A stretch of 64,000 nt of DNA from Octopus bimaculoides (Eukaryota): contig NC_068991.1 of NCBI RefSeq assembly GCF_001194135.2, forward strand, positions 72,168,400-72,232,399, written 5' to 3'. Positions 20,590-62,224 of the stretch are shown here, in pieces. Numbering within the stretch: position 1 is the first letter of the stretch; every line of letters starts with the position of its first letter. Under the pieces are notes generated by a model. That model was not told the origin of the DNA. It made no database searches and was given only the letters and a program-made list of their open reading frames with translations. The position numbers and the translations under genes were made by a program.

Positions 20590-20805
20590 AATCCTTTCTA
20601 CTATAGGCATAAGACCTGAGATTTGAGGGGAGGAGGGGCTGGTCGATTTCATTGATTCCCCAGTATTTGACTGGTACTTACTTTACCGAAAGGATGAAAA
20701 GCAAAGTCGACTTCGGTGGAATTTGAACTCTGGACGTAAAGACGAACGAAATGCCGTTAAGCGTTTTGCCTGGCATGCTAACGGTTCCGCCAGCTGGCCG
20801 CCTCA
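20590..20805 (-). mobile_element. SINE family D
   Basis: Revcomp aggcggccagctggcggaaccgttagcatgcc...gagttcaaattcc...gtcgactttg...tcatcctttcgg...aagtaccagt...tagtagaaaggatta; many copies. Confidence 0.85.
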
Positions 20806-20894: not shown

Positions 20895-23476
20895 CCTTTC
20901 TACTGCAGGTACAAGGTCGGGAATTTGGGGGTAGTGGACAAGTGGATTACATCGATTCNNNNNNNNNNNNNNNNNNNNNNNNNNNNNNNNNNNNNNNNNN
21001 NNNNNNNNNNNNNNNNNNNNNNNNNNNNNNNNNNNNNNNNNNNNNNNNNNNNNNNNNNNNNNNNNNNNNNNNNNNNNNNNNNNNNNNNNNNNNNNNNNNN
21101 NNNNNNNNNNNNNNNNNNNNNNNNNNNNNNNNNNNNNNNNNNNNNNNNNNNNNNNNNNNNNNNNNNNNNNNNNNNNNNNNNNNNNNNNNNNNNNNNNNNN
21201 NNNNNNNNNNNNNNNNNNNNNNNNNNNNNNNNNNNNNNNNNNNNNNNNNNNNNNNNNNNNNNNNNNNNNNNNNNNNNNNNNNACAGCTTACTAGAAATAA
21301 CAGCCTAACCCCTGTTAATTCACACCATGTTAAAAAAAAAAGATAGCAAGGATACATTGGATAATGTGATCCTAAATGATCTATAATCGAAAAATAAAAC
21401 GATGCAGAACAAAGTAAAAATAAAAGGGGGGGGGGTTCTGACTTCTCTGGAACAGATTGTTATTTCCAAGAAACTAAGCGGAAGTCACTGTTCATCAATG
21501 AGATAGCAATTATCGATTGGATCAAATTGAAACTTCGTAGAAATCGATTACTTCGTTGTAAGACGTAATAACTGTTATATACAGCTTTTACAAAGTATTG
21601 TAAACATTCACATCCTCTTCGCCCGGCATAAACCGGTGATAAAAGAGGAAGCTTTTGTTTTATTTTACAACGTGTAACAAGCAGCAGCCGAATTTCCCCC
21701 CTCAAATACACTACACAGATTTCTATTTTTATGTTTCTAAATGAGACATAGGGCAATGTGGTTCTTGCACGAAAAGGCGAGATGGGTATAACCGGAACAT
21801 ATCTGATCACATTTGTACTTAATCAGAGCAGAACTATAAAGGGTGGGGCTTAAACAAGAGCTATTAAGTATACACATAGGGATTGTTTTTTTTTCTTTTA
21901 CAATCCGATTTAAAAAATTTAAATTTTGCCAATTCGAAAGGAGATCGAAAAGGTAGGGGAACAGAAATGAAAATGTCAATTACGCATTTTCCAATTAAGA
22001 TGCATAATAAAGGAACAAAATAAAAGTGGATTTCTTTTTTGTTTAAAACAGCCGCCACATCCCTCTTGCAATTAACTTATTGAAGAGTGTGGGGGGATCA
22101 GGAAGAAAATTGATTCCATCCGTTTCTACAATGCAATTTTGACACAGAAACAAATTATATAAGTCGCAAAAATATCTAGAATACATGGAATGTAAAAGTA
22201 TTCGTGTTTTAAATGAAATATGTCTAGTTTTATCTAATTTTTCCTTCATGCAATATCTAAGTATTATAAAAAAAAAAACTGTTGCTGGATGGGCAGAGAT
22301 GTTTTAAAGAAAAGAAGCTAAATTAAACAAACTATAACTATAAACTGTCACAAATTTAAAACATTTTCACCCCACCCCAACACAAAAAAAATAGAAAAAA
22401 AGGACAGTTTTAAAGAAGCATTTCGAGCAGACAAAAGATTACATTCAAACACCCTAAGGGGTTTAATACAAAAGAAAAAGAGCACAGCCATCAAATGTCA
22501 CTGAGAGAAAAACCTCTACGCAGTCTTTCGAAGTGAGAAATAAACAACAATTTCCCTCAAACTACACAGAACAGTCTTTTAAAAAAGTTCACAACACGAC
22601 GTAACAAATAAGGACGAGATGGTCACGGCCAGAACGCCTTCGATCGCACATAGATCTGCTTGATCAGAGCTGACCTACGACTGACTATTCCTTACGATTT
22701 GTAAATGTTGATTGAAAGAAAGACATTATTTTCAACAAGACAACTTGTTTTTTTGTTTTCTTAAAAGTAACGAAATTTCCAATATTTTGAATCCTAATTT
22801 AGAAAAAAATCCATATTGTTTGTATTTTTAAGAGAATGGAATGAATAAATAAAAGGCCAAGAGAAGGAACATCGGAGTTGTGGGGGGGATGTATTAAGGA
22901 AAGAGGTGTGACCCGCAAACAACGTGACAAAGTTTTGTGAAAGTTAAGTGATTTATATACATAACATTTAAGGAGGAAAATAATTATTAGAGAATGATTT
23001 GGCACTATATATTGTTAATATATACAGTATTATATGTCAAATGATTTATAACAAGAAAAAAGAGAGTCAGAGAGACAGAGAGATGTTGGGTGAACAATTG
23101 TGAGTTTGAACTTATAAACATTTCATTTAAAAATGTGGAGTTAACATGAATAATATAGTCTTTATGAAGCAGAAAAACAAACAAAATAATACAATATGCG
23201 CAGCGAGAAAGTCGAGAAGTCAAATAGCATGATACAGAATGTTAATGACAGCGAAGCAATTTAAAGAAATGTATTAGAAATATTTTAATAACAGATGTGT
23301 GTGTGTGTGTGTGTGTGTTAGTGAAGAAGTAGAGAGAGAAAAAAAGTAAGTAGCGCGAATTATTAGGACTGCTTATAGAGATCTAGCGACATAACAACAG
23401 TTATGTTCAATAGCGGGAGAAAAAGTGAAGCATATGCTTTTTTTGTAGAGTGACAAAGGTGTTTGAAATAACTTAC

Positions 23477-27914: not shown

Positions 27915-28215
27915 TCTGGTTATGAAGTTTGCCTTCCAAAAACATGGTTTCAGGTTCAATTCCACTGCATGGACCTTGGGCAAATGTCTTCTGCCATAAC
28001 TCCATGCCAACCAAAGCTTTGTGAGTGGACTTGGCAGATGGAAACTGAAAGAAGCCCATCATGTGTTTATGTGTGTGTGTGTTTGCGTCTCCTTGTCTCG
28101 ATGTCATGTGATAGTTGTAAATGAGCATCACTGTCATACAAGCAGTGTCTCTCATTTCTAATATTCTGTGAAAGCATGTCTGGCCATGGATAAATATTAT
28201 TTTGCTTCAAAATTA
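27915..28215 (+). mobile_element. SINE family A2 (A head with an alternative 3' half)
   Basis: A-type head and core, then ...catttctaatattc...catgtctggccatgg shared with 31265-31805 and 40730-41040. Confidence 0.7.
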
Positions 28216-28560: not shown

Positions 28561-29208
28561 AAGAATGTGAAGGAAGAAAGAATTGAAGAATTGGTGGCTG
28601 GGATAGTCTTGCAGTAATTTACCAATTGTTCCTTCACTGTCTCTTTTTCCCTTTCTTCTCTCCTTAGCCTCCCCACCAGGGATCTTTTCACTAGTTTTAC
28701 CCCCTGCTCTCCCCACTACCTCTATAATAACTTCATACCTCCAACTTCTCCTCATCTTACAGCATTTACCCTCTAGTCCCCCCACCACCACCGCCACCAG
28801 CCAACTGACAACAGAAGGATTCAAACTCAAAGCAGAAAATGCTACAATTACCACAAGGTATTTTTCTGCCTCTCTATCATTTTGCTTGTAAAATAACTCA
28901 ACATGGTGTTATCAAAAACAACAAATAAATGTTCAAATACCATAAATATTCTAGCTGTTGTTATTTTTTGCGTGCTTCTTTGTCAAAATTAAATCATAAC
29001 AGTTATAAACGACCATTATTCTCATAGCAAATATTAATGCTGTGATATCAAAGTTCAAAAAAAGTAGCTAAGTAACTCATGCTTTGTCTAAAGCAATTAC
29101 TATGACATACACATAATTCTCTCATTAGTCTTAGCTTACAAATGTACATGCATGTGCACATGTGCGTGCACACACACACACACACTTGTGTATATGTTCA
29201 TGTATATT

Positions 29209-29532
29209 AAGAAGGCATGTGGCTTAGTGGTTAGGGCATTCGGCTCGCGATTGTAAGGTCGTGAGTTCAATTCCTGGCGACGCATTGTGTCCTTGAACAA
29301 GATACTTTATTTTACATTGCTCCTGTCCACTCGGCTGGCAAAAATGAGTAGTACCTGTATTTCAAAGGGCCGGCCTTGTCACACTCTGTGTCACGCTGAA
29401 TCTCCCTGAGAACTGCGTTAGGGGTACACGTGTCTGTGGAGTGCTCAGCCACTTGCATGTTAATTTCATGAGCAGGCTGTTCCGTTGATCGGATCAGCTG
29501 GGACCCTCGTCGTCATAACCGACAGAGTGCTC
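29209..29532 (+). mobile_element. tRNA-derived SINE family C with 10-bp TSD
   Basis: Head tggcttagtggttagggcattcggctcgcg...gagttcaattcc; CATGTATATT at 29199-29208 and 29533-29542; 3' ~190 bp shared with 46425 and 48525. Confidence 0.9.
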
Positions 29533-29569
29533 CATGTATATTGTACATGCATGAAACGGCACAAACACA

Positions 29570-29705
29570 AAACCTGAAATTCTAAGAGGGTCGGGGTTAG
29601 TCAATTATGTCAAAGCCAGGACCCAACTAATACCTGTTTTATTGACCCCGAAAGGATAAAGAGCAAAGTGGACTCAGCAGAATTTAAACTCTGAATGTAA
29701 AGAAG
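29570..29705 (-). mobile_element. SINE family D fragment
   Basis: acctgaaatt...ttattgaccccgaaaggataaagagcaaagtggac. Confidence 0.75.
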
Positions 29706-29773
29706 TGAAAGAAGTGCTTGCTGCCGGTGCCATGTAAATGGCACCTATGCATTGTAGTCGTGGTCATTGCAGG

Positions 29774-30566
29774 CAGGGCTTTGGAGTCAGCGTCAGAGTC
29801 GTGGAGTCAGAATCGGAGTTGGAGTCATGAAGTCAGAGTCGTGGATTTGAAGACGTGGAGTTAGAGTCATGGAGTCGGAGTCATGAAGTTGGAATTGTGG
29901 AGTTGGAGTCCTGGAGTCGGAAACAATTAAAGGGTAGTCGGAGTTGGTAAAACTATACCGACTCTGACTCACAGTATTCTTTTATTCTTTTACTTGCTTC
30001 AGTTATTTGACTATAGCCATGCTGGAGCACTGCCATTAGTCAAACAAATCAACCCTGGGACTTAATCTTTGTAAGCCTGGTACTTATTCTATCAGTCTCT
30101 TTTGCTGAACCACTAAGTTACGGGGATGTAAACACACCGACATCAGTTGTCAAGCAATGTTGGGGGACAAACAAACACGCACACACACACACACACACAC
30201 ACATACACACATATGACGGGCTTCTTTCAATTTCCATCTACCAAATCCACTCATAAGGCTTTGGTTGACCTGAGGCTATAGTAGAAAACACTTGCCCAAG
30301 GTACCATGCAGTGGGACTGAACCCAGAACCACGTGGCTGGTAAGCAAGCTACTTACCACACAGCCACTCCTGCGCCTGTATATATCTTTATTCTTTAATA
30401 TAAACCAGTTCTAACATATAGGCCTACTCAAAGTACAGGTGTATGCATATGCTTTATGAGCTAAGTAGACCACAATCACTTAATTACATAAAGAGGAGTT
30501 GGAGTCGCAGGTGCCAATAGTAGAGGAGTCAGAGTCAAAGTTTTTTGTTTCAACTCAGCAGCCATG
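29774..30566. mobile_element. hAT-like MITE with (GGAGTC)n, interrupted by SINE A
   Basis: Ends cagggctttggagtc... and ...caactcagcagccatg are imperfect TIRs; GGAGTC repeats on both sides of the insertion; no clean 8-bp TSD. Confidence 0.6.
29985..30385 (-). mobile_element. SINE family A nested in the hAT-like MITE
   Basis: Full copy; tctttattcttt on both flanks (possible TSD overlapping the tail). Confidence 0.9.
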
Positions 30567-30830
30567 GTTGGCACCCATGTAAATGGCACCCACCCGTGAA
30601 TTGTAGTTGTGGTCATTACCGGTGTCATGTAAATGGCACCTGTGCCGGGGGGCACATAAAAGAACCTGTTACACTCCTGGACTGGTTGGCATTATGAAGG
30701 GCATCCAGCTGTAGAAACCATGCCAAATCAGACTGGAATGAGGTGCAGCTCTCCGGCTCATCAGCTCCAGTCAAACCATTTAACCCATGCCAGCATGGAG
30801 AGGGGATGTTAAACGATGATGATGATGACA
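30567..30830 (+). mobile_element. Family B 3' part (5' part at about 29715-29773)
   Basis: The gtgccatgtaaatggcacc unit is present on both sides of the hAT-like insertion; (gat)n tail abuts the right IR arm. Confidence 0.8.
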
Positions 30831-31264
30831 AACATATACACAAGCTCACACATCTGTGTGTGTGTGTGCACGTGTGCACATGTGAGTGCATGAGAATGTA
30901 CATTCGTAAGCTAAGCCTAACGAGAAAATTATATGTCATAGTAATTGCTTTAGACAAAGCATGAGTTACTTAGCTACTTTTTTAAACTTTGATATCAACA
31001 GCATTAATATTTGCTATGAGAATAATGGTCGTTTATAACTGTTATGATTTTATTTTGACAAAGAAGCACACAAAGAGTAACAACAGCTGGAATATTTGTG
31101 GCATTTAAACACTTGTTTTTTGATAACATGATGTTGAGTTATTTTACAAGCAAAATGATTCTCTAAGCTAACAAAGAGATAAACACTAACTCGTGATTAT
31201 ATATTGTGTACAAAATAATACAATGGTTATTTTAAAGTTGGGGTGGTCAGACATAAAGTTAGAT

Positions 31265-31805: not shown

Positions 31806-32020
31806 TGTACATTCTTTTCTACTCTAGGCACAAGGCCAAAAATTTTTGGGGGTGGGTGCCAGTCGATTAGATCGACCCTAGTACGGAACTGGTACTTAAT
31901 TTATCGACTACAAAAGGATGACAGGCAAAGTCGACCTTGGCGGAACTTGAACTCAGAACGTAAAGACAGACAAAATACCACTAAGCATTTCGCCCAGCGT
32001 GCTAACATTTCTGTCAGCGC
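31805..32020 (-). mobile_element. SINE family D
   Basis: Near full-length match to the 43258-43475 copy. Confidence 0.9.
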
Positions 32021-33397: not shown

Positions 33398-33690
33398 CAA
33401 GGTACATTCCAGAAGTTTCCAGACATTTTTAGAAGAAGCAGTTATAACCGTCCTCAATTTGTGTAATTCTAGTATACCATTACTATACACCTAATAAGCT
33501 AACCTGCCGAATTTTGTTATTCCAGATGGAAGGAGATGCCTCATGCAGTACTTTGAACACACTCTACTAAACACTGCTCGTCACAACTGACTAGTTTGCA
33601 GAATGCAGTGATGACATAAAGACAATTTGGAATCTCACTATGCAATAAAGTTTTGTTTCAGACAGGGCAAAAATACTGCAGAAACTTATG
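33398..33690 (+). mobile_element. Mariner 5' remnant
   Basis: ta|caaggtacattccagaagtttcc terminus; ORF ESHYAIKFCFRQGKNTAETY matches the mariner N-terminal EQRxxIKFCFxLGK motif. Confidence 0.75.
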
Positions 33691-33720
33691 TACATATTAC
33701 AAAAATAATAAAAAAATATA

Positions 33721-33804
33721 CAGTACTGTTTCTACTTCACGGATTTTCACCTATCGCAGGGGTGGGGGTGGAACGTAACAGCCGCGATAGTCGAGGGATT
33801 ATTG
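33721..33804. mobile_element. Short Tigger/pogo-like MITE
   Basis: ta|cagta...cctatcgc...ggaacgtaac..ccgcgata..cgagggattattg|ta. Confidence 0.6.
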
Positions 33805-33963
33805 TATTTGATTTTATCAATTGTGGAAGAATGAAAGGAAAATCTAAGTTTTCTATTATAATTAATTTCTTCACATGCTGGAAGCTTTATCAACCTCACT
33901 ATTTAACTAATACTTTATTTTATCAGGGATGGAAGGTAAAGTCCGAGTTTTCTATTATAATTA

Positions 33964-34453
33964 CCGTAAATCCTCGAGTATAATCCGCATTTTTTTCCCG
34001 AAAATTTAAAGGTCAAAATCCCTAGTGCGTACTATATACGAGGTTAAAAATTTTTAATATTTTCTAAGCAATGTCCGAGTCTCTATTTGCTGTCCGGCAA
34101 TGTTTATTCAGACGCATTTTGTGATGTCGGGCTTGTAACCGATAGTGATAAATATGTAAAGGCAATTTACTTAATATTTAGTTTTCACTGACGTTATTTA
34201 TGTTATTTCTTTATTTTCTGCAAACAAAGTGCACAAAAAAAGCTACACGTTTGCATTATGTTATATATACAATAATAATAAAGGACGTTGCCGTATATAC
34301 GTTTACAAACCAAGGACGTTATACAGACCTCCTTGACTCAAGTTAGAGAAGGGGTACGTATTATACACAAGGTTTAGGTTTTTCAGAGGTACAGCCCCCT
34401 AAAAATCCCCTGCGTATTATACTCAAGGGCGGACTATATTCGAGGATTTACGG
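33964..34453. mobile_element. 490-bp Tc2/pogo-type MITE
   Basis: 25-bp TIRs ccgtaaatcctcgagtataatccgc / gcggactatattcgaggatttacgg (2 mismatches); TA on the left, GA on the right. Confidence 0.85.
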
Positions 34454-34779: not shown

Positions 34780-36030
34780 ATTTTTATTACATATATATAG
34801 ATGTATATGATAGATGAATAATACAAAACCACATTAAAATAAAAATCCTAAACAATAGTCATGATTCTTCCGTAATATAAGTTTTTACAAATGAAAGACA
34901 AAGAAAAGAAGAAAAGCGGGGGGAAAAAAGGGAAAAAGGGAAGAGAAAAATAAAAGAGAAAAAATGTCAATGCAACACCAAGTGCCACAACTAGCCGTAC
35001 ACCACAAGGATCAACAGAACCTACTGAAGCAGGCCAGTATGCTTGCAGTATTACCACGGACGATGGTGAGGCTAAGACGTTGGAATAGCCAAGCACTTTC
35101 ACAGGCACCACCTGACACCTTGGTGCAGAAAACTGTCAACGATGACAAGCACTTTGTGGTTAGTGGCCCAGTTCCTCCAACCGTCCCAAACACCACAGGT
35201 TGGAAGAGATAGTTCTCTGCCAGGTCCTGATACTTCAGGGTTTTATTCCGTTTGGTTTTGGAAGCAGTGACCCTTCCCTTTACTGCAGCGTCCAGGATGT
35301 GTGAGGGGGTAAGAGTCATGGATTGTGGTGTCCCAGATGAGGAACCTATCTTTAACCAGAGACAGAGGGTAAGACCATCTGGTCTCTTTCCATCACTTCT
35401 GGATAATCCTGCCAGCTCCAGAACTGAGGGGATATTAAGAGTCAGGGCCCGCTTAATGATTAGGTAGCTTGGTGTGACAAGCGAAACAACCAGCATTTAG
35501 GTGGCAATACAGACCACGAGAATCTGTTGGATTGCGGGGCCTCCACAGTGGCATCTCAATCCTATACAGACGTCAGCTTCCACTCTGAGTGCGATAGAGA
35601 TGCAGAGTTCATCTAAGCTGGCCACAGACAAGGAATCAATCCAGTCCTCCGAGAATTTTGTACAAGCTGAAAGTAGGCGACACCTTGATCAGACCGAACA
35701 CGGAGAGAGTTGAAAGTGACACCTGAATGCAGATTCTCCCATACTCTCTGCTTCCGTCTATCCTCAACTGTAGCAGAAACTGACAAACCCAGCTCCCTCC
35801 AGTGTTTTATTGGCAGAGATATCGGGGGTGGTTTGCCAATTACCTTCCCCAAATGGATGGCTGTTGGTTCACAAGGAGCTTGTCTGTCCTTCGACAAGTC
35901 TTGTTTTTAATCTTGTCGGGTGTCGAGACCCACCTTCACAAGAGAAGCCAGCTACTCAAGCCAGTTTAGTCACCAACCACTCATCCACGGAACAGCTAGT
36001 ACTGTTTACATTATACCAGTAGCAGGTTTC
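34780..36030 (-). mobile_element. CRE-clade non-LTR retrotransposon, 5'-truncated (Zn-knuckle plus restriction-like endonuclease)
   Basis: RLLSAC...EDWIDSL...ALRVEADVC..RCHCG followed by IIKRAL..IPSVLELAGLSRSDGKRPDGLTL...KYQDL..NYLFQPV...WLFQRLSLTIVRGNTASIL; frameshifted. Confidence 0.85.
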
Positions 36031-37559: not shown

Positions 37560-37720
37560 TAATCCTTTCTGCTACAGGTAGAAGGTCTGAAATTCTAGAG
37601 GAGGGGGCTGGTCGATTACATCGATTCCAATGCTTGGTTTATTTTATCAAATCCAAAAAGATGAAAGACAAAGCTGATCTTGGCAGAATTTGAACTCAGA
37701 ACGTAAAATCAGGAGAAATG
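37560..37720 (-). mobile_element. SINE family D
   Basis: Match to other D copies. Confidence 0.8.
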
Positions 37721-41991: not shown

Positions 41992-42001
41992 NNNNNNNNN
42001 N

Positions 42002-43257: not shown

Positions 43258-43590
43258 AATCTTTCCTACTCTAGGCACAAGGCCCGAAAATTTTTTGGGG
43301 AGTGGCTCAGTCGATTAGATCGACCCAGTACACAACTGGTACTTAATTTATTGAACCAGAAAGGATGAAAGGCAAAGTTGACCTCGGTGGAATTTGAACT
43401 CAGAACATAAAGACAGACGAATTACCGCTAAGCATTTCGCCTGGCATGCTAACACTTATGCCAGCTCACCGCCTTACCCAACGAAATATTATTGTATTTT
43501 TTTCTACTCTAGGCACAAGACCTGAAATCTTTGGGGAGAGGGCCATTCGATTAGATTGACCCAGTATGCAACTGGTACTTAATTTAGTAG
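43258..43590 (-). mobile_element. Two tandem SINE D copies (43258-43475 full, 43500-43590 3' part)
   Basis: Match to other D copies. Confidence 0.85.
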
Positions 43591-45435: not shown

Positions 45436-46424
45436 GTGTGTTCATGTGTCACCAGCACGATTATATATATATATATATGTTGCCAGGTACCACCCTTTTG
45501 CTTGTATTTCGTTTTATCTGATATATTTGTATAGATACACTAATCTATCTATCTCTTTATTACTCCATATATATTCTCTTTCTCTCTCTTTCTCTGCATA
45601 AACATATCTCTTCATAGCTATGTATATATGTGTGTGTATAAAAGAGTAATATCAATAATATCTTCATAGAATTGTTTAGCTGTCACAGTCACAGTAAGCT
45701 CTACCACCCGGAAGGGCAGCTGGTTGTGAAACAATGCTTCAGTATTATGTCTGTCTGACTCATGCTAGCGTTGACAAAAAGACATAAAAACAAATATGTA
45801 CACATACATATATGCACACACACACATACGAACATGCACACATGCATGCATGTACACACGTGCACACACACACACTCTCACACATGCACACACCACACAC
45901 ACATATTGTGTACCTCTCTGACCCAAACATAGGAAATTAAATCCTCTCTTGTCATACTTGTTCCTCTTCAAACATCTTTATTTACTTCCAGACTTAAAAC
46001 CATTTTCTAAAATAGCTATGAACGTCCCAATGGAATATTTTCTATGTAGTTGTTCACCCTGCTAAAAATGGTAACCAAATCCATTTCAAATTATACCATT
46101 ATACCTTAAAACAAGAAGGACACATTGGACAATGTAGTCTGCTGTTTCACGAAAGAAATACCAAACAAGCATAAGATGACTTGGTCACACCTGAAATGCT
46201 TTTGGTTATCGGCCCGTTCACTCAGAGTTGACATTCCGTCCATCCTATATGTGAGCAGGGAAAAGTGGATGATGCTGATGATGATGATCAACAGTGACTA
46301 TGATGGAGGAGGAGGAGGGCAGTGAATTGGATGCTTTGCAGTATTTTTTCTGGCTCTTTACATTCTGAGTTCAAATATCTCCAGGATCAACTTGGCCCTT
46401 CATCCTTTCAGGTTTGATATTGTT

Positions 46425-46700
46425 GTTGTTGGCACTCCGTCGCTTACGACGTCGAGGGTTCCAGTTGATCCGATCAACGGAACAGCCTACTCGTGAAATT
46501 AACGTGCAAGTGGCTGAGCACTCCACAGACACGTGTACCCTTAACGTAGTTCTCGGGGATATTCAGCGTGACACAGAGTGTGACAAGGCTGACCCTTTGA
46601 ATTACAGGCACAACAGAAACAGGAAGAAAGAGTGAGAGAAAGTTGTGGTGAAAGAGTACAGCAGGGTTCACCATCATCCCCTGCCGAAGCCTCAGGTTTG
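46425..46700 (-). mobile_element. SINE family C2, 3' part
   Basis: Near-identical to 48530-48800. Confidence 0.9.
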
Positions 46701-47113
46701 ATAAAACAAGGTATAAAGTACCAGTTAAATACTGGGGTGTGNNNNNNNNNNNNNNNNNNNNNNNNNNNNNNNNNNNNNNNNNNNNNNNNNNNNNNNNNNN
46801 NNNNNNNNNNNNNNNNNNNNNNNNNNNNNNNNNNNNNNNNNNNNNNNNNNNNNNNNNNNNNNNNNNNNNNNNNNNNNNNNNNNNNNNNNNNNNNNNNNNN
46901 NNNNNNNNNNNNNNNNNNNNNNNNNNNNNNNNNNNNNNNNNNNNNNNNNNNNNNNNNNNNNNNNNNNNNNNNNNNNNNNNNNNNNNNNNNNNNNNNNNNN
47001 NNNNNNNNNNNNNNNNNNNNNNNNNNNNNNNNNNNNNNNNNNNNNNNNNNNNNNNNNNNNNNNNNNNNNNNNNNNNNNNNNNNNNNNNNNNNNNNNNNNN
47101 NNNNNNNNNNNNN

Positions 47114-48322: not shown

Positions 48323-48524
48323 AAAAATCTAGATGTTTTTTTAGAAAGTTGCATTTAGGGTCCTCATTGCCCACATGAAGACTTAAGGCTGCAAGTTCCC
48401 TACATCTTTATTATTGTTGCAAAAGGAAGGACATATTTGATAATGTAGTCCTAGTCAGGGCTAGTATTATGTACCAGACAAACTAGATGATCCCCTAGGG
48501 TGTTAAAATCTGGTGAGACACATT

Positions 48525-48915
48525 GTTGTTGTTGGCACTCCGTCGCTTACGACGACAAGGGTTCCAGTTGATCCGATCAACGGAACAGCCTGCTCGAGAA
48601 ATTAACGTGCAAGTGGCTGAGCACTCCACAGACACGTGTACCCTTAACGTAGTTCTCGGGGATATTCAGCGTGACACAGTGTGACAAGGCTGACCCTTTG
48701 AATTACAGGCACAACAGAAACAGGAAGTAAGAGTGAGAGAAAGTTGTGGTGAAAGAGTACAGCAGGGTTTGCCACCATCCCCTGCCGGAGCCTCGTGGAG
48801 CTTTAGGTGTTTTCGCTCAATAAACACTCACAGCGCCTGGTTTGGGAATCAAAACCGCGATCCTATGACCGCGAGTCTGCTGCCCTAACCACTGGGCCAT
48901 TGCGCCTCCACGGTG
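48525..48915 (-). mobile_element. SINE family C2, full length
   Basis: Revcomp head ggaggcgcaatggcccagtggttagggcagcagactcgcggtcataggatcgcggttttgattccc (tRNA-like A/B boxes); (aac)n tail. Confidence 0.9.
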
Positions 48916-50380: not shown

Positions 50381-50942
50381 NNNNNNNNNNNNNNNNNNNN
50401 NNNNNNNNNNNNNNNNNNNNNNNNNNNNNNNNNNNNNNNNNNNNNNNNNNNNNNNNNNNNNNNNNNNNNNNNNNNNNNNNNNNNNNNNNNNNNNNNNNNN
50501 NNNNNNNNNNNNNNNNNNNNNNNNNNNNNNNNNNNNNNNNNNNNNNNNNNNNNNNNNNNNNNNNNNNNNNNNNNNNNNNNNNNNNNNNNNNNNNNNNNNN
50601 NNNNNNNNNNNNNNNNNNNNNNNNNNNNNNNNNNNNNNNNNNNNNNNNNNNNNNNNNNNNNNNNNNNNNNNNNNNNNNNNNNNNNNNNNNNNNNNNNNNN
50701 NNNNNNNNNNNNNNNNNNNNNNNNNNNNNNNNNNNNNNNNNNNNNNNNNNNNNNNNNNNNNNNNNNNNNNNNNNNNNNNNNNNNNNNNNNNNNNNNNNNN
50801 NNNNNNNNNNNNNNNNNNNNNNNNNNNNNNNNNNNNNNNNNNNNNNNNNNNNNNNNNNNNNNNNNNNNNNNNNNNNNNNNNNNNNNNNNNNNNNNNNNNN
50901 NNNNNNNNNNNNNNNNNNNNNNNNNNNNNNNNNNNNNNNNNN

Positions 50943-52450: not shown

Positions 52451-53040
52451 CACAGGCTAACAAAAGAAATTTTTTTCTTTGTTGTCAAAAAATTTGGACC
52501 TGAGCTACGGGCTTTTTTAATGCACAGAATCTAAAAATGGCATCCATTTAGTACCATTACGTTAAGACTTTAAGATTCTAGATCCAGAAAATTACATTTT
52601 TTTTTTTGTCAATAAAACAGCTTATGTGAACAGAAACTGGGTTTTCTTCAAAACCAGAATGTCTTAAAATTCTTCTGAAAATTTCTGCAGACAAATTTCA
52701 TCATTGTATATACCTAATTTCTCATGAATTTGCCTTTAGATATATATTCTTGAGCACTGAACCTCAGAAAGATCATAAGCCAAGTTCCAGCAATAGCTGT
52801 CTGCTTTGATATATTTGTTCCATTGATTTTATGTCCTGAAGGAAGCATTCTCCCTGCTCATCACTTCTGTCTCCAAGATTTTCAGGGAATTTATCAAGGT
52901 GACTGCGGGGATAGTGCCGATTAATGCTCATATTTGCTCCCAACTTTTGAAGGTTCTCCAGCATGTTGTTGACTATTTCAGTAGGGTTGGCTGCTATTTT
53001 GTTCCCCAGAAAGCAATTAACATCCATTACAAGTGAATTC
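52451..53040 (-). mobile_element. Chapaev3-like DNA transposon 3' end
   Basis: FLGNKIAANPTEIVNNMLENLQKLGANMSIN.HY..SHLDKFPENLGDRSDEQGECFLQDIKSMEQIYQ resembles the Chapaev3 HSHLDFFPxNLGxVSDEQGERFHQDI motif; terminus ...ttttgttagcctgtg. Family assignment is from memory. Confidence 0.7.
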
Positions 53041-53334
53041 CATGATGCTGCTTCAATGGAAGTGGTGTTGGTAGCTGAGGCGGTCAGGATGACGGTGAGA
53101 GTAAGTGATGTGAAAGACAGTAGTGATGGTAGTGGAGGGGAAGGCAGTAAAGTCAAAGGTATTGATGGTGGTGGCATCAGAAGTCTGAATGGTGTGTGTA
53201 TGGCAGATGTGGTGGCGATGGTGGTGGTACTGTTGTTTATCATGCAGTTTTGCAATAAGTTCCAAGTCAACAAATTATATCATGGTTTTAATGAAAATTG
53301 TTCATTGCTTGAAAGATATTGTTCAAGTTTACTC

Positions 53335-57480: not shown

Positions 57481-58674
57481 AAGCTACAGTGAAACTTTCT
57501 CTAGTGAAATCACAATGGGGCCCTTATTTTCTTGCCCAAAAGGCAGAGAAAGCTGACAAAATACTGGCTGCTTTCTTAAACCAAAAGTAATGGAAATGTC
57601 CAGCATCCTGGCTCCTCAAACCACCTCCTTTCTTCATCAGTTGGGTCAGGTTGCCATGCACAGAAATGACTGCCAAGCCACCATGCAGAATGGCTATTTT
57701 AACAAAACTCTCTCTCCCTTGTTCTCTCCCCCCTCTCTCTCTCTCTCTCTCTAACTCTCTCTNNNNNNNNNNNNNNNNNNNNNNNNNNNNNNNNNNNNNN
57801 NNNNNNNNNNNNNNNNNNNNNNNNNNNNNNNNNNNNNNNNNNNNNNNNNNNNNNNNNNNNNNNNNNNNNNNNNNNNNNNNNNNNNNNNNNNNNNNNNNNN
57901 NNNNNNNNNNNNNNNNNNNNNNNNNNNNNNNNNNNNNNNNNNNNNNNNNNNNNNNNNNNNNNNNNNNNNNNNNNNNNNNNNNNNNNNNNNNNNNNNNNNN
58001 NNNNNNNNNNNNNNNNNNNNNNNNNNNNNNNNNNNNNNNNNNNNNNNNNNNNNNNNNNNNNNNNNNNNNNNNNNNNNNNNNNNNNNNNNNNNNNNNNNNN
58101 NNNNNNNNNNNNNNNNNNNNNNNNNNNNNNNNNNNNNNNNNNNNNNNNNNNNNNNCACACACACACACACACGCCCCCCCACCCACACCCACACACAGCT
58201 CATTGGTTTGATGCATTCACCCATTTTTCATTTCGTCCACTTGGACTGCTGCAAGATAATTAATTGTATGACTTGCCATTATATATTTCTCAAAAGTATT
58301 TTCCAATTTGTCGAACTAACAACCAAAAAACCAAAAAACCAAAAAACAAAGATATCGATTAATGCTTTTAAAATTATCCATAATACCTTTTAACCAAACG
58401 ATTTTAAAAAAGGATAAAGAAGATATTGCATTCCTATAGATTATAATAGTTTAGATCAAGTTAATACCTCATAAGCCTAGGTCAAGGTTAATCCGGCTTT
58501 GTGGGGAAATAATCTTGATCCCTGAGAAGATTAGAGTATATATGTTTATAGAGAAGTCATCAATCCTATGTTAGAAATAGATTCCAGAGTAATGACTGCA
58601 GGTTCAATTTGGATATAAAGCAGGCAGACAGGCAGATGATAATGTTGGTTGGGATTTCATCTTGACCAACCGGA

Positions 58675-58835
58675 ATTTCTCTCTCTCTCTCCCTCTCTCT
58701 CTCTCCCTCTCTCCCTCTCTCTTTCTCTCCCTCTCTCTCTCCCTCTCNNNNNNNNNNTCTCTCCCTCTCTCCCTCTCTCTTTCTCTCCCTCTCTCTCTCC
58801 CTCTCTCCCTCTCTCTTTCTCTCCCTCCTTCCCTC
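58675..58835. repeat. (CT)n-rich polypyrimidine tract
   Basis: Direct. Confidence 0.9.
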
Positions 58836-61635: not shown

Positions 61636-62224
61636 TTCCTGGTAGATTCTTCACCTGTTTCCATCTTTTGTTTTCTGTAAATTTGAATTATATATATANN
61701 NNNNNNNNNNNNNNNNNNNNNNNNNNNNNNNNNNNNNNNNNNNNNNNNNNNNNNNNNNNNNNNNNNNNNNNNNNNNNNNNNNNNNNNNNNNNNNNNNNNN
61801 NNNNNNNNNNNNNNNNNNNNNNNNNNNNNNNNNNNNNNNNNNNNNNNNNNNNNNNNNNNNNNNNNNNNNNNNNNNNNNNNNNNNNNNNNNNNNNNNNNNN
61901 NNNNNNNNNNNNNNNNNNNNNNNNNNNNNNNNNNNNNNNNNNNNNNNNNNNNNNNNNNNNNNNNNNNNNNNNNNNNNNNNNNNNNNNNNNNNNNNNNNNN
62001 NNNNNNNNNNNNNNNNNNNNNNNNNNNNNNNNNNNNNNNNNNNNNNNNNNNNNNNNNNNNNNNNNNNNNNNNNNNNNNNNNNNNNNNNNNNNNNNNNNNN
62101 NNNNNNNNNNNNNNNNNNNNNNNNNNNNNNNNNNNNNNNNNNNNNNNNNNNNNNNNNNNNNNNNNNNNNNNNNNNNNNNNNNNNNNNNNNNNNNNNNNNN
62201 NNNNNNNNNNNNNNNNNNNNNNNN

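Follow-up and report, generated by a model that had tools for sequence, protein, structure and literature searches.

Fold-back DNA transposons, such as Drosophila FB, Galileo (P superfamily), Tetris and the nematode Tm1 (Mutator/Foldback), consist mostly of long inverted arms with little unique sequence in the middle, and these non-coding elements carry target duplications at their flanks and can fold as one long hairpin. Here, we describe a structure resembling them in a 64,000-nt stretch of the Octopus bimaculoides genome (NCBI RefSeq assembly GCF_001194135.2, contig NC_068991.1, positions 72,168,400 to 72,232,399 of the forward strand; hereafter the window, with coordinates counted from its first nucleotide). 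In this structure, two inverted arms of ~325 bp at 28876-29198 and 30831-31159 enclose an interior of nested repeats, and the outer end of each arm is flanked by TCTCT. The structure is most likely a decayed insertion of a fold-back-type DNA transposon, and its most informative features are the conflict between the ages of arms and interior and a hint of gene conversion between the arms.

The target-site duplications (TSDs) of FB, Galileo and MULE-foldback elements are 7-10 bp long, and the arms of FB-type elements are built of tandem subrepeats. Miniature inverted-repeat transposable elements (MITEs) are defined by high copy number. Transib elements combine a 5-bp duplication with CAC... or CACWRTG-type termini, integrase-type elements (Ginger and long terminal repeat (LTR) types) end in TG...CA, and Polintons end in AG...CT. 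Inverted terminal arrangements are formed by Penelope-like elements. Reported TSD lengths are 4-5 bp for Ginger2/TDD, 6 bp for Polinton and 3-6 bp for LTR-type integrases, and IS3EU/GingerRoot has a 6-bp TSD and TA..TA ends (PMC10045372). In octopus genomes, unclassified families of terminal inverted repeat (TIR) elements and MITEs are numerous (PMC13282606), and another one without assignment would thus not be surprising.

Arms, termini and the flanking direct repeat

By local alignment, the left arm (28876-29198, plus strand, 323 bp, 30% GC, starting 5' with ATCATTTTGCTTGTAAAATAAC) pairs with the reverse complement of the right arm (30831-31159, minus strand, 329 bp) at 293 matching positions, against 18 mismatches and 30 columns with gaps (identity 94% ungapped and 86% gapped). 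The arm coordinates in an earlier note on this DNA proved exact, and the identity of about 90% given there falls between these two values. A repeat search additionally recovers both arms as collinear inverted blocks (I1, I4, I5 and I6), including a perfect block of 52 nt. The outer termini of the element read ATCATTTTGC... on the left and ...GCAAAATGAT on the right (ATCAT...ATGAT), the arms stop at the same nucleotide on both sides, and since the flanks are non-complementary past these points, the inverted repeat has sharp ends. When both arms are joined by a 24-nt spacer, folding yields a single hairpin of -278.7 kcal/mol (DNA parameters), compared with a mean of -75.5 kcal/mol for shuffled sequences (z = -43).

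The arms are non-coding, with longest stop-free stretches of 49-51 amino acids (aa), and have a GC content of 30-32%, the inner 60 bp of the left arm being rich in CA/TG. No tandem subrepeats were found by TRF within 28876-29198 or 30831-31159, and Rfam gave no match in the arms at gathering thresholds and just mir-297/466-like noise over the CA/TG-rich inner parts at E<=10. The inner arm ends (29133-29205 and 30832-30912) are locally self-complementary, and the mir-297/mir-466-like signals there (34.8 bits, with a gathering threshold of 90) are probably artefacts of composition.

These features bear on another reading, in which the 3' end of a retroelement (a Penelope-like element, for instance) formed a tail-out inverted dimer during a single target-primed reverse transcription, with both nicked strands serving for priming. 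Such a dimer would carry a real duplication around the whole unit, with the arms as truncated retroelement ends rather than TIRs bound by a transposase, and the short non-palindromic spacer could be the surplus of a longer cDNA. The inverted terminal arrangements known from Penelope-like elements provide a general precedent. These elements are also abundant in octopus (PMC13282606). However, beyond the noise described above, neither a hammerhead ribozyme nor another Rfam motif was found in the arms, even at E<=10, there is no open reading frame (ORF) remnant of a reverse transcriptase, endonuclease or GIY-YIG domain, the outer ends carry no simple-repeat or A-rich tail, and no related sequence is present elsewhere in the 64 kb. 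We regard this origin as improbable.

The arms are separated by 18 substitutions (12 transitions and 6 transversions) and ~9 indels. Twelve transitions among 18 substitutions are as expected from the decay of two real copies, and differences of this extent show that both arms are physically present rather than produced by a hairpin artefact of the assembly. Caution is in general warranted for structures near gaps, as the window contains eight runs of N (2207 bases in total: 692-701, 20959-21282, 41992-42001, 46742-47113, 50381-50942, 57763-58155, 58748-58757 and 61699-62224) and thus belongs to a scaffolded draft assembly. These gaps, and an interior built of high-copy repeats, are what could speak for an assembly error, either a path that followed a hairpin or an incorrect join across the interior short interspersed elements (SINEs). 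Yet the runs nearest to the structure are 20959-21282 and 41992-42001, none lies inside it or within 7 kb of it, and matching direct flanks would not result from joining two loci in error. Considering also the differences between the arms, an assembly artefact is the least probable of the explanations weighed here.

Very improbable as well is the independent insertion of two members of one ~325-bp repeat family, ~1.6 kb apart and in opposite orientation. Inverted pairs of SINEs are common in the window (e.g. I2 and I3), but typical same-family pairs here are 70-85% identical, as opposed to 94% for the arms. The left arm is flanked by TCTCT and CATGTATATT and the right arm by GATGACA and TCTCT, so that neither arm has a target duplication of its own, and it is instead the outer flanks that match each other. 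Further, blastn, a search with an nhmmer profile built from the two arms and a scan for the terminal motif that tolerated 3 mismatches all failed to find a third copy in the window, in agreement with the previous claim that the arms match no other family there.

The two copies of the putative TSD can be read directly at 28871-28875 (left) and 31160-31164 (right), where TCTCT had already been reported outside both outer ends. The shared flank comprises these 5 bp only, and the adjoining flank bases differ. When 400,000 pairs of sites were drawn at random from the window, a direct repeat of at least 5 bp abutted both boundaries in 0.17%, and the chance rises to 1.2% when a slip of 1 nt is permitted per boundary. 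The combination of sharp arm ends and an exact 5-bp direct repeat (0.17% chance) favours a single insertion by staggered cuts. A 6-bp reading, TCTCTA, needs asymmetric ends, with the left end moved by 1 nt and the terminal T unpaired. We rejected a TA duplication of the Tc1/mariner type, for which TA/TCATT...AATGA/TT would have to include a mutation and the similarity in CTCT would stay unexplained. A 21-nt similarity at 28195-28215 (D11) was dismissed as a chance match inside the body of a flanking SINE-like repeat.

The earlier note had presented a transposon and a product of template switching as alternatives, and the sharp ends and the 0.17% repeat lend the mobile element the better support. 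In the other case, a one-off local inverted duplication, arising by template switching or fold-back priming in the course of replication or of the repair of a break, would have copied a 325-bp segment across an existing SINE cluster, with TCTCT as a coincidence. The termini, which lack any known TIR motif, and the presence of just one copy in the window agree with such an event, which would nevertheless need a coincidence of 0.17-1.2% for TCTCT. A run-on switch predicts AGAGA, the complement of the left flank, rather than TCTCT, and microhomology is therefore no explanation for the repeat; at the inner junction (30829-30831), no microhomology is visible. On balance, we consider this origin unlikely.

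Our preferred explanation, held with somewhat better than even confidence, is that a non-autonomous DNA element of the long-TIR type (fold-back or MITE-like), without coding sequence, inserted once after mobilisation in trans and was subsequently invaded by SINEs and homogenised in part by gene conversion. A transposase or integrase supplied from elsewhere would have bound the identical termini ATCATTTTGC... and cut the two strands of a TCTCT target with an offset of 5 nt, with gap repair leaving the flanking TCTCT repeat. Before the insertion, the target would have read ...TTTCTGCCTCTCTAAGCTAACAAAG... with a single TCTCT; a search with the joined flanks for a paralogous uninterrupted site gave no match crossing the junction in the window. 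Retroposons would then have inserted between the arms, with one of them, SINE A, marked by its own 10-bp duplication, and the similarity of the arms would have been kept above the level expected from their age, most likely by patchy arm-to-arm gene conversion.

Interior repeats and the ages of arms and interior

The interior (29199-30830, 1632 bp) comprises ~1.4 kb of recognisable SINE-type repeat and ~160 bp without assignment, and about 24-190 bp of it remain outside assigned repeats. Beside the left arm, ~24 nt without assignment are found in two spacer remnants (29199-29208 and 29533-29546). The first is CATGTATATT (repeat family D12), which is also the left TSD of the nested SINE A (29209-29532, plus strand), and the second contains the other copy of CATGTATATT followed by GTAC, so that SINE A lies within a perfect 10-bp duplication (29199-29208 and 29533-29542). 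The head of SINE A is tRNA-like by eye, and no tRNA call was obtained for it from ARAGORN or Rfam; in its 3' half, the identity to the copies at 46432-46614 and 48535-48715 is 89-90%. Adjoining the second spacer remnant, ATGCATGAAA sits on the approximate boundary of a SINE-body-like fragment of repeat family D (29547-29717, plus strand), which is truncated at both ends and has further copies in the window at 31829-31966, 43276-43413, 20608-20754 and 37587-37707. The next features are a short piece resembling the 5' module of SINE C (29724-29773, plus strand; repeat families D6 and D9) and a GGAGTC-rich minisatellite with ~9 copies of a 14-bp period (29792-29921; repeat family D8).

The nested SINE B (~29966-30381, minus strand) has an internal (CA)n run, and the (GAT)n tail of the nested SINE C (~30545-30829, plus strand) comes to within 1-2 nt of the right arm. 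Between them lies sequence without a match elsewhere in the window (30400-30494), followed by a short GGAGTC-rich stretch at 30495-30542 that is similar to the minisatellite. GGAGTC-rich sequence thus occurs to either side of the reverse-oriented SINE B, which suggests that SINE B went into or next to a pre-existing GGAGTC-rich array.

A clean target duplication is seen for only one interior insertion, that of SINE A; a 7-bp ACAAACA 'duplication' around the block of repeat D and SINE C was rejected, as it lies partly within repeat D. The proposal that removal of the nested insertions would leave a spacer of a few tens of bp describes a possible state of the locus, but later insertion is demonstrated for SINE A alone and ~160 bp carry no assignment. 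As a separate observation on the same family, two SINE A copies 2 kb apart with an N gap between them (46419-46693 and 48522-48794) are 96% identical over 275 bp and far younger than the SINE A copy inside the fold-back.

For dating, each nested SINE was measured against the consensus of its family's other copies in the window. The Jukes-Cantor (JC) distances are 0.22 at all sites and 0.19 at non-CpG sites for SINE C, and 0.12 and 0.09, respectively, for SINE B; the consensuses were derived from just 6-10 window copies, and subfamily structure may inflate the distances. The arms, compared with each other at all sites, have a pairwise JC distance of 0.060, or ~0.030 per arm. In Octopus vulgaris, a JC distance of 0.09 corresponds to ~25 million years (My) and 0.2 to ~56 My (PMC13282606). 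On this calibration, the arms look less than 10 My apart and the nested SINEs 25-55 My old.

Several observations weigh against a simple insertion followed by invasion. The apparent age of the nested SINEs is 3-6 times that expected from the divergence of the arms, and of at least 4 insertions every one lies between the arms, with 0 in the 652 bp of the arms themselves, for which a crude calculation with uniform targeting gives P ~0.004. An interior older than the arms would be the simpler explanation for both the SINE ages and the restriction of insertions to the centre. Further, a single copy is seen in the 64-kb window, and AT...AT termini with a 5-bp TSD fit no described superfamily. The local inverted duplication introduced above draws its strength from the same data: it accounts for every 'insertion' lying between the arms, and it needs no extra assumption for interior SINEs (JC 0.09-0.22) that are older than the arms (0.03 per arm). 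It is, however, at odds with SINE A, which is a genuine later insertion only 10 bp from the inner end of the left arm.

SINEs older than the arms allow imply either arm-to-arm gene conversion or an interior that is partly older than the arms. The distribution of the arm mismatches is relevant here: from the tip inward, there are 0 in 29 nt, 11 in 86 nt, 1 in 128 nt and 6 in 80 nt. This clustering (permutation P=0.017) is consistent with a gene-conversion tract, and the identity of the terminal 29 nt between the arms, followed by 86 nt with 11 mismatches, supports the preferred insertion. The low-mismatch tract (28991-29118, 128 bp with 1 mismatch) could reflect gene conversion or else constraint on this segment. 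The 86-bp high-mismatch tract has diverged by ~0.07 per arm, which approaches the age of SINE B if this tract was left unconverted. Alternatively, the interior could predate the arms through mobilisation of a composite unit or through later creation of the second arm. Taken together, the central clustering and the ages suggest conversion between the arms, a hot spot that directs insertions to the centre, or an older interior.

The idea that the ancestor was a near-perfect palindrome of ~0.7 kb therefore stands as one possibility and is not secure, being weakened by the ages of the SINEs relative to the arms. In this regard, the closest parallels are genomic palindromes with arm-to-arm gene conversion, for example on sex chromosomes, whose arms are likewise too similar for the age of the sequence that they enclose. 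Sex-chromosome palindromes extend over tens of kb, as compared with hundreds of bp here, where we infer conversion at one locus (P=0.017). The mismatch in age between arms and SINEs would also recommend this locus as a compact system in which to study gene conversion and insertion directed at the centre of small palindromes.

Affinity to described classes of elements

The structure shares with fold-back types its long inverted arms, its non-coding nature, the duplication at its flanks and its folding into one long hairpin, and the arms (323 + 329 bp versus ~24-190 bp outside repeats) make up most of the element. It differs from them in having a 5-bp rather than a 7-10-bp duplication, unlike termini and, in comparison with FB, arms without tandem subrepeats. 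Generic features of MITEs are also present, namely TIRs, a target duplication and a lack of coding capacity. Palindromic MITEs, such as those derived from Harbinger in Xenopus, resemble it in being small, non-coding and nearly fully self-complementary, with a minimal unit of ~0.68 kb in the present case, whereas PIF/Harbinger elements have 3-bp TWA duplications and the present unit measures 2.3 kb.

Among classes with a matching duplication, Transib/RAG-like elements share the 5 bp but have CAC... ends instead of ATCATTTTGC, and in Ginger2/TDD, for which 5 bp falls within the 4-5-bp range, the ends are of the integrase type (TG...CA) and not AT...AT. In both of these classes, the TIRs are tens of bp long, compared with ~325 bp here. 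The earlier reasoning from TSD lengths, which had considered long-TIR elements and Transib, was hence incomplete, as Ginger2/TDD and LTR-type integrases also give 5 bp, but it was right in that the ends fit no named superfamily. TIRs of hundreds of bp, a length that suits the present arms, are a feature of Polinton/Maverick elements, which differ in their AG...CT ends, their genes and their size of 15-20 kb, as opposed to 2.3 kb. No polymerase B, integrase or capsid genes or remnants of them are present in the element, which has no long ORFs and a SINE-type interior, and the link to Polintons could at most be that of a TIR-only deletion derivative. The Polinton duplication is 6 bp long (PMC10045372).

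A bolder version of the preferred explanation takes the arms for the TIRs of an undescribed octopus transposon lineage, with ~325-bp TIRs, ATCAT...ATGAT termini and 5-bp duplications, whose copies would be gene-converted, targeted by insertions in their centres and a source of long double-stranded RNA (dsRNA) for the unusually active ADAR system of cephalopods; in this full form we find it rather doubtful. If the arms do define a family, an unclassified long-TIR DNA transposon would join the cephalopod repeat catalogue, with a combination of end motif and duplication that lies outside the standard superfamily tables, and its palindromic units would be candidate sources of the long dsRNA behind the very high hyper-editing of octopus. 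If the structure is single-copy, it would represent one decayed structural oddity in a genome of which about two-thirds are repeats.

Searches for related sequences were also extended beyond the window. Exact scans of the JGI metagenomes, IMG/VR and GTDB, which are collections without cephalopod DNA, gave no match to the terminal 22-24-mers or to an internal 25-mer. A six-frame chimeric 'protein' of both arms had no match at E<=10 among 5.8 billion proteins, in which octopus non-coding DNA is not sampled, and a chimeric query of flanking ORFs gave no match in these protein collections either. Exact look-ups of three ORFs at or beside the structure returned nothing on record in collections that cover O. 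bimaculoides by annotated gene models only. As a control, a SINE C ORF from the window matched only 23 protein clusters. The seven control clusters that were looked up are UniProt/MetaClust entries with no contigs recorded, and five of them are named Octopus bimaculoides gene models; the best matches of the SINE-family ORF are likewise O. bimaculoides gene models in UniProt, with 81-87% identity. The control thus indicates that the protein collections contain annotated gene models of O. bimaculoides but no raw genomic ORFs, and the null results outside the window reflect a lack of coverage and not an absence of copies.

Potential for dsRNA and surroundings of the element

Octopus bimaculoides has exceptionally high hyper-editing, the share of its loci that could give rise to long, nearly perfect dsRNA is unusually high, and in Xenopus palindromic repeats of DNA-transposon origin (Harbinger-derived) are the most edited class (PMC5625713). 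By analogy, it is reasonable to regard the fold-back as a candidate ADAR substrate, should it be transcribed. The differences between the arms at the DNA level (12 transitions and 6 transversions) are uninformative on editing.

Upstream of the structure, a CT-rich stop-free frame of 89 codons (28607-28873, plus strand) runs up to a splice-donor-like AAG/GTATTT, which is located 18 bp upstream of the left TCTCT. No exon was identified beside the structure; the frame is a candidate only, and if it is real, the fold-back would lie at the start of an intron.

The window as a whole is repeat-rich and has a GC content of ~36%. On the plus strand, an ORF of 118 aa at 33627-33983 has a sub-threshold match to the helix-turn-helix domain of the Mos1 transposase (PF17906, E=0.003, under the gathering score); it probably belongs to a decayed mariner-type element and has no sequence relation to the fold-back arms. 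Two additional ORFs on the minus strand, at 35011-35496 (161 aa) and 52773-53273 (166 aa), are protein-like and not of low complexity, have no Pfam match and may be remnants of transposable-element proteins.

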